From Blastocystis sp. Blastoise (Eukaryota; Protista; Bigyra: Opalinata), in contig JBBPEB010000013.1 in the NCBI GenBank assembly GCA_039096225.1, positions 682,001 through 746,000 of the forward strand: DNA of 64,000 nt, in the 5' to 3' direction. A model generated the notes under the pieces. That model had not been told where the DNA came from. It was given only the letters and a program-made list of their open reading frames with translations, and searched no databases. Position 1 is the first letter of the stretch. Each line of letters opens with the position of its first letter. Below are positions 16,700 to 36,333 of this stretch, piece by piece. A program made the position numbers and the translations under genes.

Positions 16700-19600
16700 T
16701 TAACTAGTAATACCAAGATGTCTAGCATATGATTTTGTAATAACATCTGTAAATACTTGTATAAATGAATTTTGATCATTATCTTCTCTAAGGAAAGTAT
16801 GTGTTGGATATAATTCATGTACAGTATTATAAGTTCTTCTTAATTCTTTAGCAAGAACAGGTACAAAATATATATCAACATTTAATCGTTTTAATTCATA
16901 TATACGTTGTTTCCATACATCATTCCAATCTTGATGAGTATCAGGATGTTCAAAGAAACTACAATCTTCAGAAACACCATGATTTGGGTAATCACCTACA
17001 ACTACCATTAAATGCTTATATTTATTATAAGGTTCTGCATTAATACGTTCATATCCTTGTTTTATACCTCCTTGAACATCTTCACAATATCCTGAACAAC
17101 TTTCATCACCAAAACCACCTCCTTCCGTTATTAATCCATCTATAAATAAATATATTTCATTTATATCTTCTTTTATACCACTACATGAAAATTGAGGTTG
17201 TTCTGTTTCAAAGAAATCTCTATAACCTACTACCTGCATAGCTATCTTTGCATTATCTTTATGTGCTGTTTTACGAATATTTACTAAAGATTTAAATATA
17301 TTTTTAATATATTCTTGTATTTCTTCTCTAATTGGTCCCATAGATCCTGTACAATCCATTAATATAGATAAACAGAAATCATTTGTTAAACCACTAGGAC
17401 GATATACATCTATTTCTTTATGTTCTACATCTGAATATTTAGACATATCAATAGTTTTAGGTATATTCACATTTACATTTTGTAATACTAAATATTTTTC
17501 TATATTTAATAACCATATAATAGCATTTGATATCCATCGACTAGTACCATCTTCTGTAAATTCGATAAATAATTTAGAAGCAGCAGTATCTATAATCATT
17601 CTTCCTTCATTATTTATAGATTCACGTAACATAATAGCAACATTTCCTTCATGTTCACGTGCAAATACTTTGAAATTATTATCTATTAATTTCTTTTCAT
17701 CTAAACAAGCTAATGTTTTACCTTCATATATACGATATAAACCAGTATCAATACGACAGGAGGCTTCATCTTGGAAAAAATCAGTACCTATAGTGACAAA
17801 AGTACCCTTATTAACATTACTATTATTCTTTTTATCTCTTGTCATATAAGAACCACCTTCTATACGTTTATTGGATGTTATAAATTGAATTTTATAAAAT
17901 TCACGGAAATATATATCAGCTTCATAAGTAAAAGGGAAATTTTCTAATAACCAGAATAAACTACCTCCATGAGTATGATAATAATGAAGATAATTTAAAA
18001 ATGGAGATAAATAAGAAATATCAGGATTACCTGCTAATTCTGGTAATAATCCATCACCTGCAGAACATGTTATACAAACTACTTTATATTTACCAGTTTT
18101 TATTTCTTGTATAGCTGTAAAATAATCATATACTACTTTAACTTGAAATCCTTTTTGATCATGTAATTTTATATAAGGAGACATCATATCTTTAAGTTTA
18201 TTTGGTAATCCTTTCATAAATACATCATAAGTAATATCTTTATCAATAACATTACCTTCAGTATCATATTTATCCGATCTTCTTAAATATAATAATATAA
18301 ATAATATAGAAAAATCACCAAATTGATGATCTTGACCTAAATCATAAGAATTCGATTCAGTATTCGCTAATAAACTATTATTAAAACTATCTAATGTACT
18401 ATTTACATTAAATAATTTAGCTCTTAATTCATATATACTATATTCACCATCAATAGAATCTATACATTTCGTATCAAATTTATGAACTTCTAATGAATTA
18501 TATTGCTTATTCTCAATAAATAATGAATCTATATTTGATTTATATAAATCTTTTGGTTCTTGTTTAGTTTCTATATGTATATTCATAATAGCATCTCTTA
18601 TATGTTTAGGATCTTGACTCCATAAGAAATTAGGATATATATTTTTATAATCATTTAAATATTTACCAATACCAATAGCAATTGTTTGTATATCATTTTG
18701 ATTAATCGATTGTTGAATAGATTTTTTATTATCATCAATATTCGTACCATTAGTAAATATAAATAATAAGCCAGGATTACTTCTTGCCATTATAGTAGCA
18801 TTTGCATATTGAATACCATTAGATAATACTGTTTGATTTGTAGGAAGAATAAGTAATAATAATATATTTGTTAATATAGATGTTGTCCATAAATCAGAAG
18901 AAGGTATACCACAACATATTTTATGTATAGTATTATTACATATCCATATATCTATTTCACTTATACTCATTTCACTTATAGCTCTTAATAATAACATAAT
19001 TGTTAATATAGAATGTTCTCTATTTAATTCATTAAATCCAGAAATAGAACAATCAATAATAAAAGATACAGAATAACTACGTATTTTATTACCTGTCTTC
19101 TTTTTAAATATTTTACCATCACCTGATTTAGTTATAATATATTTAATATAATTCGATATATGTAATGAAGTACCTGTCATACTTGGAACCCATGATGTTG
19201 GTTTATTTGGTGTTAATATACTACTATTTAAAGAATAAAATAATATATCACCTGGTATATTTTCATTTAAATCACGATATAAATGAATACTACCACCATT
19301 TGTAGAATATGTTAAATCTTTATCTAATATAGTTGGATATATAGAAGAAGAAGAAGATAATAAAGGTAATATACTATGTAATACACTATAAAATGTATCA
19401 ATATTATCTTCTTTAGCTTTTTGTAATATACTTAATAAAGATTGTATATAATCTATATGAATATTATTATCTTTCTTATATTTATTATATAAAGTACATT
19501 TAAATTGTTCTTTCGTAGGAAGAGAATCTTTTTCTTGTTCATATAAATAAAATAAACTATTTTCTTTACTTTCTACATTAATAAAACTATTTGATTGAAT

Positions 19601-34600: not shown

Positions 34601-36333
34601 CTAGAATCATTATATGACTGAATATTATTATTAGTATTATTATTAATATTATTATTAATATTATTAACAGTATTATTATTAGTATTATTATTAATATTAT
34701 TAACAGTATTATTAATATTATTAACAGTATTATTATTATTAGTAGTAGTAGTATTAGATGAAGATAGTTGAGAATAATTAGAAACAGAAGGAGGAGATGG
34801 TGAATGATCTTTAATATGTACTGAATTATTATTAGTTTCAATTTCAATATTTGATGTAGAAATTATAGGAATAGAAGTAGAAGTAATAGAAGAAGTAGAA
34901 GAAGAAAGAGTTGGAGATATCATGGATTTATTTTGATAAATAGATTCAAGAGGAGGAGGAGAAGGAGATGGAGCAATAGGAAGAGAAGGAATAGTAGTAT
35001 TAGAAGGAATAGTAGTATTAGAAGGAATAGTAGTATTAGAAGGAATAGTAGTATTAGAAGAAATAGTATCATTTGAGGAATTATACATATTAGATTGAAC
35101 AGTAGATTGAGACTTCTATATATATAAATATAATAATAAATATCTATATATATACAATGAATATAACACCATTATTTGTAATGCCATTTTGTACTAATGA
35201 TTTAGTAATATCTATTTGTTTACCATTACTCCAAAAAGAAATAGAATCTGGAATTCGAATAGATTCAGCAGAAAACATCTACATATTAGATATATAATAT
35301 TTCTTAATAACAAGCAATATTTATAATTATTTAAATAATAATAATAATAATAATAATAATAATAATAATAATAATAATAATAATATAAATACAGATCTCA
35401 TTTTCGGTATGATTTGATTAAAGATATCCATAATAGAACAAACAATTGGTTTTGAATAGGTATCAAAAGAGAAAAATAATTGTATATAATTATTAGTATT
35501 TTCAGGAAGAGATATATAAGAATTAGACTGAGAATAAGAATTATTAAAATTATTATTATAATTATCATTTGATGAGAATGAAAAATTATAGTTGTTTCTT
35601 CGATTCAATGGATTCATAGGAGTAGAAAATGTATTAGTATTATTAGTATTAGTATTATTATTAATAGTATTATTATTAATAGTATTATTATTAAAAGAAG
35701 AAGAAGAAACTGAAGGAAAAGACTCTTGAGAAAAAGAGGATTTTACTTCATTTTCGTGTTCTTCTTGAGACCCATGCATTGTACCTATATATATATAACT
35801 TTATAGATAACATTCATATGTTTTCTATTTAAATTTTTAGAAAACAGGTAATAATAAATAAAATAACAATATATATATATATATATATATACTTCCAAAA
35901 GCAGTTGATCTATTTTCATAGGAAGGACTATTTGAATTATTCATTGAAAGAGACATAGACATATTTAATGGATCTATAAAAAAAATAAAAAATATAAATT
36001 TAAAATAACAAAACAAAATATATATATATATATATATACTACTTAAAACCTTTTTCATTGTATTTCTCGATTGAACAACAATCCAAGAGTCAGAATCAAC
36101 ACTTATATCTTTAACATAAGACCCTAAAAACTTAATTGGTTTATCTTTATAAGTCCAGACTTGTTGGATAGTCTGTATTTTAAATTCAGACTATATTGAA
36201 AAAATTATTATACTAAAATGGCTATGTATAAAAAACATACCGTAATTGACTTTGCTATTGCAAACAAAGAAGTATCCTCATTCACATAGTAGTCTCTGAC
36301 CTCCCCATTAATTATAAAACGCAAGGTAACCAT
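16700..36333 (-). CDS. Giant (~6,190 aa) midasin-related protein: Ubl-Ubl-[6x AAA+]-linker-VWA-like-VWA-GATase-like-VWA; 15 exons, last exon 33078-16700
   Basis: Exons 36333-36241, 36190-36043, 35973-35893, 35784-35393, 35278-35156, 35115-34402, 34321-34265, 34210-34094, 34001-33953, 33912-33871, 33817-33734, 33656-33576, 33523-33464, 33322-33179 and 33078-16700 join with GT-AG introns in consistent phase (sum 18,564 nt). Walker A-type motifs GTTSSAKT, GSKDTGKS, GAPGVGKS, GPSPSGKT; AAA_5/midasin motifs (ELLG..GPFTDAF.HG..LLLDE, ERLNSL, HPNFR, PALLNRF); MIDAS-like DCSIS and DCTGS. Confidence 0.82.
25510..25607 (-). repeat. (AAT)n microsatellite encoding a ~32-residue poly-Asn tract
   Basis: Pure ATT repeat on the + strand within the giant exon; similar poly-Asn runs occur in the RBR and ATR genes. 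Confidence 0.9.
33371..33461. repeat. Intronic (AT)n microsatellite
   Basis: ~45 AT units directly following the donor of an intron in the giant gene; comparable tracts at 37805-37880 and 62967-63070. Confidence 0.95.
34984..35068 (-). repeat. 18-bp coding tandem repeat encoding (P/S)SNTTI, 4-5 copies
   Basis: AGAAGGAATAGTAGTATT repeated on the + strand. Confidence 0.85.

Follow-up and report, generated by a model that had tools for sequence, protein, structure and literature searches.

In the textbook example of midasin, an AAA+ ring exerts a pull on a ubiquitin-like (Ubl) domain by way of a metal ion-dependent adhesion site (MIDAS), and built-in Ubl domains that are not conjugated to other proteins are familiar from the Rad23/Dsk2-type proteins and the UBX cofactors of p97. 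The coupling of MoxR ATPases to VWA (von Willebrand factor A) domains has been described (PMC7159879), as has the binding of Ubl domains by MIDAS (PMC8837202). Here, we analyze a locus where all these elements appear to be combined in a single protein, namely, a gene at positions 16700-36333, on the minus strand, of a 64-kb stretch of the genome of Blastocystis sp. Blastoise, from a tortoise gut (G000:C16:682001-746000; hereinafter, the window, that is, the whole stretch of DNA analyzed). The domain order of the predicted protein is Ubl1, Ubl2, a low-complexity spacer, a segment encoded by eight mini-exons, six AAA modules, a linker, VWA1, VWA2, a GIFT-like domain, and VWA3, which is of the VWA_4 type. 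Sequence comparison places this gene in a family, so far undescribed, of giant AAA+ proteins that consist of a single chain and are relatives of midasin; the family is represented by at least 15 giant paralogs in the Blastoise genome and is found in other anaerobic protists as well. A literature search turned up no paper describing a giant midasin-like family, in line with the preliminary description of this locus, where the protein was not recognized as a member of any characterized family.

The family is both large and dispersed. The last 565 residues of the protein have counterparts in 15 open frames, the window gene included, which measure 4,429-5,515 codons and are distributed over ten contigs, as well as in about six shorter loci, and the giant loci are scattered, not clustered, across the genome (33.3 Mb in 34 contigs, ~22% GC). 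Lind et al. (Genome Res 2025), who reported tortoise Blastocystis isolates with genomes of 26-33.3 Mb and 21-23% GC, make no mention of midasin, AAA or von Willebrand domains. A word-index protein search yielded two relatives only; the range of the family was taken from an exhaustive search for which the last 1,200 residues served as the query and which retrieved 271 proteins, 29 of these at E<=1e-30. Among them are the Blastoise proteins KAK8809840.1, KAK8813344.1, and KAK8807361.1, and the tail, with the order VWA1-VWA2-GIFT-like-VWA_4, is colinear in one stretch that spans residues 26-1180 of the window tail in the comparison with KAK8807361.1 and residues 27-1111 in that with KAK8809840.1. 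Relatives were also found in Blastocystis ST1, B. hominis, and metagenomes, in the fornicates Kipferlia, Aduncisulcus, Chilomastix, and Dysnectes, and in the parabasalid Histomonas. What these foreign proteins have in common with the window protein is VWA2 together with the GIFT-like domain and, in some, the whole tail (E 1e-29 to 1e-177). In public records, members of the family are labeled 'hypothetical' or, wrongly, 'Midasin', the latter being the automatic name of the Kipferlia bialata relative GIQ80035.1. The closest foreign relative, P0001 (locus L004; GCA_019973095.1, JAIFII010000624.1, 1-16133), is 41% identical in the tail and resides on a contig of 39.6% GC, the source of which is probably another Blastocystis subtype. 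Two more distant giants, the 6,830-residue P0099 from JGI metagenomes and the 7,695-residue P0002 from Bryopsis sp., contain many AAA_5 modules and VWA domains. There is, thus, a hint of a wider superfamily of midasin-like giants that extends beyond anaerobic protists.

The preliminary description had proposed that the gene was not the housekeeping midasin, and a search for the midasin ortholog elsewhere in the genome bears this out. In a genome-wide scan, the midasin-only lids AAA_lid_5 and AAA_lid_7 were found on contig C34 only, and neither was detected in the window protein at E<=0.01. The multi-exon C34 gene includes a 481-residue exon that is colinear with Rea1 residues 105-479 (E 3.8e-96), ends in a single MIDAS following a charged exon, and displays no trace of the three extra tail domains; judging from these features, it is the true midasin ortholog of this organism, so that the window gene, which has 14 giant paralogs, does not qualify as the sole midasin ortholog. 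The best solved match of the window ring is also midasin, at E 8e-38 for the whole ring and out of register, with module 1 aligned to Rea1 residues 1019-1182, and the MoxR proteins CbbQ and NorQ come next. Given that midasin is the best solved match of both the ring and VWA2, the window gene could be imagined to be the housekeeping midasin, merely divergent, but the presence of a canonical midasin on C34, together with the lack of the lids and the presence of three extra tail domains in the window gene, reduces the probability of this explanation to a practically negligible level, and we consider it refuted by the C34 ortholog. The window gene, then, almost certainly represents a family distinct from midasin.

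The part of the protein from the start of the ring region to the end of the linker consists of the following features.

32048..32380, minus strand: conserved domain immediately before AAA1, matching all paralogs and P0001 (E 1e-14 to 3e-36)
31328..32065, minus strand: AAA1, Pfam AAA_5 (E 5e-11); last Gly of Walker A replaced by Ala, Walker B DE intact
30458..31270, minus strand: AAA2, Pfam AAA_5; both Walker motifs lost
29648..30325, minus strand: AAA3; Walker A intact, Walker B without Glu
28148..29050, minus strand: AAA4, degenerate; hhalign against AAA1 and AAA6, P 60-75%; colinear with homologs
27068..27865, minus strand: AAA5, Pfam AAA_5 (E 2e-23); Walker A intact, Walker B NE here and DE in most relatives
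25988..26830, minus strand: AAA6, Pfam AAA_5; Walker A intact, Walker B ED
20303..25987, minus strand: linker, ~1,900 residues; contains runs of poly-N and terminates in acidic/basic low-complexity sequence

The six AAA modules that had been proposed on first reading are all present, with the Walker A sites where they had been placed (residues 427, 689, 1009, 1434, 1826, and 2174 of the open reading frame, or ORF), and the long linker predicted to follow the ring measures ~1,900 residues as opposed to the ~2,000 originally claimed. Pfam AAA_5 matches modules 1, 2, 5, and 6, and module 3 has a clean P-loop. The pattern of motifs is stable across six aligned family members. The P-loop is retained in modules 1 (with its Lys-Thr), 3, 5, and 6, and neither motif survives in modules 2 and 4. 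Walker B reads DE in module 1 and ED in module 6 and is devoid of Glu in module 3; in module 5, it is DE in four members and NE in the other two, namely, the window copy and the paralog closest to it. By these motifs, modules 1 and 5 are of the hydrolysis type in the family, modules 3 and 6 retain the P-loop only, and modules 2 and 4 are dead. The TGTTTGTT motif was counted as well, and the count is uninformative for this gene. The linker showed no match in PDB, Pfam or Atlas.

Downstream of the linker lies the tail, which encompasses four domains.

19373..20245, minus strand: VWA1 (AF2 model), with a degenerate metal site, D-T-H-L-T
18503..19345, minus strand: VWA2, MIDAS-type, with DCSIS at ~19054 and a profile match to the Mdn1/Rea1 MIDAS
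17423..18385, minus strand: GATase1-like/GIFT/ThuA-like domain (AF2, Foldseek, VIA, Atlas)
16703..17440, minus strand: VWA3, VWA_4 type, with D-C-T-G-S at ~17371; homologs match Pfam PF25106

A sequence search of the whole tail against PDB produced no match, and the domains were compared one by one, using alignments built from the matches of the exhaustive search with the last 1,200 residues. For VWA1 and the GIFT-like domain, no Pfam family was matched at the sequence level, with all homologs searched, and for these two domains the assignments come from models. The AlphaFold (AF2) model of VWA1, with a predicted local distance difference test score (pLDDT) of ~80-88 over residues 1-210, has 286 matches in PDB at E<=1e-3, and, among the matches listed, all are VWA domains, the MIDAS of MDN1 and Rea1 included; thus, according to the model, VWA1 adopts the VWA fold, with a degenerate metal motif. 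The VWA2 profile matches the MIDAS of Schizosaccharomyces pombe Mdn1 (6or5, E 6.8e-6) and Chaetomium Rea1 (6qt8, E 3e-4), both ranked ahead of the TRAP and integrin I domains, and also matches the terminal MIDAS of the C34 midasin. In VWA3, the motif D-x-T-G-S-M is invariant in the alignment, and 24 of the 27 homologs match Pfam VWA_4 (PF25106). The MIDAS motif is kept in the alignments of both domains, as DCSIS in VWA2 and as DCTGS in VWA3. The GIFT-like domain was modeled with a pLDDT of 88.9; structure searches with this model recovered ThuA-like proteins and IFT52 (Foldseek, E ~2e-4; VIA, Z 14.6-15.3 over ~200 residues), and the Atlas matches agree with a GATase1-like fold. The model, accordingly, identifies the domain at 17423-18385 as a three-layer, class I glutamine-amidotransferase-like fold that is nearest to the non-catalytic GIFT/ThuA branch. 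Neither Cys nor His of a Cys-His-Glu triad is found among the invariant or near-invariant columns of the alignment of 29 homologs of this domain. All four elements of the tail had been anticipated in the preliminary description, as a degenerate VWA (~20150), a VWA with a DCSIS MIDAS (~19050), an alpha/beta domain (18315-17500) that is now resolved as the GATase1-like/GIFT fold, and a terminal VWA (~17350).

At the opposite end of the protein, two segments appear to be ubiquitin-type domains, each split between two exons. A profile of exon 2 with its counterparts from three paralogs and one foreign relative has ubiquitins for all of its top 7 PDB matches (E 0.0026) and aligns, in register, to the C-terminal half of ubiquitin, whereas the exon 5 profile (A6) has 274 PDB matches, all to ubiquitin, at residues 43-70 (single-domain E 6e-6 to 0.03). 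One paralog exon matches Pfam ubiquitin (E 0.006), and exons 1 and 2 run ungapped along ubiquitin in a by-eye reading of the letters, as distinct from a computed alignment. A C-terminal Gly-Gly is present at the end of neither Ubl1 nor Ubl2. Tandem ubiquitin-type exons were located upstream of the ring in the window gene, in four other giant paralogs, and in L004. With the small half-domain profiles that were used, Ubl exons were not detected in the remaining giant copies, and no ubiquitin-type N-terminus was detected among the relatives outside Blastocystis, which are mostly fragmentary models. The combination of Ubl domains with parts of the tail recurs elsewhere: in KAK8801900.1 (P0018; C25:9275-11305, plus strand; 657 residues), a Ubl is fused directly to the GIFT-like domain and VWA_4, and two metagenomic proteins (P0141 and P0144) combine a Ubl with the GIFT-like domain. 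A further exon matching the Ubl1 profile (E 6e-6) is located at C3:1538086-1538208, on the minus strand, with no detected paralog nearby. Thus, the notion of a midasin-related protein with extra VWA domains and Ubl segments of its own at the N-terminus, put forward at the outset, is supported at the level of sequence.

The placement of the Ubl domains in the same protein as the ring depends on the gene model. The minus-strand ORF at 16700-33247 consists of 5,515 codons, of which the first ~57 represent intron read-through. From the open segments and splice sites, we rebuilt a model of 15 exons on the minus strand, running from the ATG at 36333 to the stop at 16700.

36241..36333, minus strand: exon 1, with the start codon (the first ATG in frame after a stop) and the N-terminal half of Ubl1; donor GTA at 36240
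36040..36190, minus strand: exon 2, second half of Ubl1 (to ~36065); ubiquitin profile match; significant against the closest paralog
35893..35973, minus strand: exon 3, a short piece of low complexity; frame open, phase 1 on both sides, TAG/GTA sites
35393..35784, minus strand: exon 4, N/S-rich, then first half of Ubl2 (from ~35490); 130 open codons, chance P ~3e-6
35156..35278, minus strand: exon 5, second half of Ubl2; ubiquitin profile match; p ~0.005 against the closest paralog
34402..35115, minus strand: exon 6, S/T/P/N-rich spacer of 238 codons, chance P ~9e-11; similar spacer in paralogs
34265..34360, minus strand: exon 7, from the exon model
34094..34210, minus strand: exon 8, from the exon model; weak colinear match to the closest paralog
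33953..34001, minus strand: exon 9, from the exon model
33871..33912, minus strand: exon 10, from the exon model
33734..33817, minus strand: exon 11, from the exon model; weak colinear match to the closest paralog
33576..33656, minus strand: exon 12, from the exon model; weak colinear match to the closest paralog
33464..33523, minus strand: exon 13, from the exon model; exon end common to the closest paralog
33179..33322, minus strand: exon 14, from the exon model
16700..33078, minus strand: exon 15, 5,459 codons and the stop

The model comprises 18,606 coding nucleotides (6,201 amino acids). All 14 predicted introns are GTA..TAG, of 40-141 nucleotides, all 14 junctions preserve the frame (phases 0 or 1), and there are no stops inside the exons. 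The initial claims that the 5515-residue ORF was essentially the last exon, and that 14 upstream exons spliced in phase to yield ~6,190 residues, fit this model closely. The GC content is 3-18% in the predicted introns (mostly 6-7%) vs 18-37% in the exons. The introns within 33079-36240 are nearly pure A+T, many with long TA runs, and in this genome, the sharp step in GC content where exon and intron meet can serve to mark exons. At the base composition of the window, a stop is expected about every 11 codons, and hence, the long exons 4 and 6 are far beyond chance, whereas the short exons, taken singly, are not. What lies at 16700-36333 is a genuine gene, some 6,200 codons long.

That all 15 exons belong to one transcript appears likely from the comparison of genomic sequences. 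Five giant paralogs have the Ubl1 and Ubl2 exons in this same order, at a distance of 2-3 kb upstream of their rings, and the two exons are also found upstream of the ring in L004. In the closest paralog, which is 52% identical in the tail, the introns are at the same places inside both Ubl domains, exons 2 and 5 are individually significant, and exons 8, 11, 12, and 13 have weak matches in colinear order. These comparisons were made exon by exon with tblastn, and by the Smith-Waterman method with shuffles, an earlier tblastx comparison of the upstream region having been dominated by low-complexity matches. In addition, the public model of another paralog, KAK8809840.1, fuses an N-terminal multi-exon part to the ring; the annotation pipeline of Lind et al. 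(Genome Res 2025) favored introns strictly supported by RNA sequencing.

If the parts of this protein work together, they could do so in a manner reminiscent of midasin. In such a scenario, ATP would be turned over in the ring, mainly by modules 1 and 5, and the linker would move as a result; the tail would grip an acidic residue of a protein ligand via the metal sites of VWA2 and VWA3; and the gripped ligand would be pulled on or remodeled. By analogy with midasin and the MoxR-VWA pairs (PMC7159879; PMC8837202), we put the likelihood of such midasin-like pulling slightly short of even. For the Ubl domains, two roles can be envisaged: they might bind the tail of the protein to which they belong, serving as an internal ligand or a brake, or they might bring the machine to partners that bind ubiquitin. 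The stand-alone KAK8801900.1, in which a Ubl is fused directly to GIFT and VWA_4, speaks for a functional connection of Ubl and tail, and even so, we consider docking on the protein's own tail unlikely on balance. A bolder version of this idea, also one that we advance only tentatively and with low expectation, is that the Ubls are ligands built into the protein for those of its VWA domains that have metal sites, with the ring, the linker, the 'hand', and the 'handle' all in one chain, and that the 15 or more paralogs are a diversified set of such machines peculiar to anaerobic gut protists. If true, the machine could be self-inhibited until a competing ligand appears, or the molecules could link up head to tail in force-bearing chains.

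Taken as a whole, the interpretation of the window gene as a giant member of a midasin-related family, with the anatomy described above and a pulling mechanism surmised from that anatomy, seems to us probable. Several observations weigh against it. Among the RNA sequencing runs on record that were screened, none contained the gene (best share 0.14), and no identical protein of at least 3,002 residues is present in a collection of 5.8 billion proteins. The mini-exons 7-14 are individually non-significant in the comparison with the closest paralog, and the assignment of the ubiquitin-type domains is at the level of sequence profiles. In this copy, Ala replaces Gly in the P-loop of AAA1 and Asn replaces Asp in Walker B of AAA5, implying that its ATPase may be weak, and the linker has no similarity to the midasin linker. 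The same protein collection includes other genes of the Blastoise genome. It may be that public records lack an annotation of the gene at 16700-36333 or contain it in pieces.

Some of these observations could be taken to mean that there are two genes here, with exons 1-6 (Ubl-Ubl-spacer) forming a small separate gene and the AAA-VWA protein beginning further downstream. None of the RNA runs on record that were screened contains the gene, the mini-exons are weakly supported, and read-through past the exon 6 donor leads to a stop after 16 codons. Yet the 14 of 14 junctions in phase, with uniform GTA..TAG introns, are at odds with a split, as are the Ubl exons, which keep their position upstream of five paralogs that are just 35-52% identical in the tail, as well as in a relative from a 40% GC genome; the link between N-terminal exons and the ring in KAK8809840.1 points the same way. 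We therefore consider two separate genes distinctly unlikely and prefer the single transcript of 15 exons. Nor does it seem that the gene is a decaying or inactive copy, that is, either a scaffold devoid of motor activity or a gene that is silent. The absence of an identical protein and of an RNA run with this gene, and the substitutions in the AAA1 P-loop and the AAA5 Walker B, would be compatible with decay, were it not that a stop-free frame of 16.4 kb is impossible to keep by chance at 22% GC, that the P-loop Lys-Thr and the Walker B Glu are retained, and that the AAA1 P-loop is common to two paralogs and the AAA5 change is common to the closest paralog. The presence of both changes in paralogs suggests that they are conserved states, and we regard inactivity as very unlikely.

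A different view of the function is that these proteins, instead of being housekeeping remodelers, make up a system of conflict or surveillance, of the MoxR-vWA kind, that is undergoing diversification and in which each paralog would recognize a different foreign or damaged protein. Such a role would suit the existence of at least 15 deeply diverged copies, the fast evolution of their N-terminal parts, and the patchy spread of the family among gut and sediment anaerobes, and MoxR-vWA modules do serve in prokaryotic conflict systems (PMC7159879). However, no effector domain (nuclease, protease or pore former) was found in the 6,201 residues of the window protein, and the copies are scattered across the genome, not clustered. 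A conflict system is, in our estimation, a rather improbable alternative to the midasin-like remodeling machine.

If the preferred reading of a single, midasin-related chain is correct, evolution has placed ubiquitin-type domains, a midasin-type ring, and three VWA domains in one protein and then, multiplied the gene. Fifteen copies at ~15-18 kb each amount to ~0.7-0.8% of the 33-Mb genome, and the family marks a large unexplored piece of Blastocystis cell biology. Should the parts work together, these proteins would provide a natural test of Ubl-MIDAS force coupling wired in cis.

Within the window, the giant gene has a neighbor on the plus strand: at 12358-16287, an ORF of 1,309 residues contains a match to the Pfam IBR domain, of RBR-type ubiquitin ligases (E 2e-8). 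The two genes are convergent, with ends 412 bp apart. A functional link between them was considered and dropped, given that other IBR matches in the genome were not found beside any paralog locus; the adjacency looks like chance.

Comparison with the known systems puts the peculiarity of this family into relief. Like midasin/Rea1/Mdn1, the window protein is predicted to be a single chain with six AAA_5 modules of the MoxR clade, a very long linker, a charged low-complexity stretch, and a MIDAS-type VWA with D-x-S-x-S. Unlike midasin, it lacks the midasin lids, a colinear match, and similarity in the linker, and its modules 2 and 4 are dead; whereas midasin has a single MIDAS in the last position, three additional domains surround VWA2 of the window protein. 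The Ubl domains that midasin binds belong, in trans, to Rsa4 and Ytm1, whereas the window protein apparently carries two ubiquitin-type domains itself, and midasin is one essential gene, whereas the window family consists of many paralogs. With the bacterial MoxR-VWA pairs (RavA-ViaA, NorQ-NorD, and CbbQ-CbbO), the window protein shares the AAA clade and the logic of an ATPase ring acting with a VWA partner; in those systems, however, small subunits assemble into a homo-hexamer and the VWA protein is separate, in contrast to the six unequal modules and three VWA domains in one chain. The fold of the domain at 17423-18385 is common to the GIFT/ThuA-like proteins (the IFT52 N-terminal domain, OST48, and ThuA-like proteins), none of which has this domain placed between two VWA domains as in the window protein. 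Finally, as in the Rad23/Dsk2 proteins and the p97 UBX cofactors, an N-terminal ubiquitin-type domain without Gly-Gly is associated with an AAA+ machine, with the difference that, in those systems, the Ubl resides on a small adaptor, whereas in the window protein, it seems to have become part of the motor itself.

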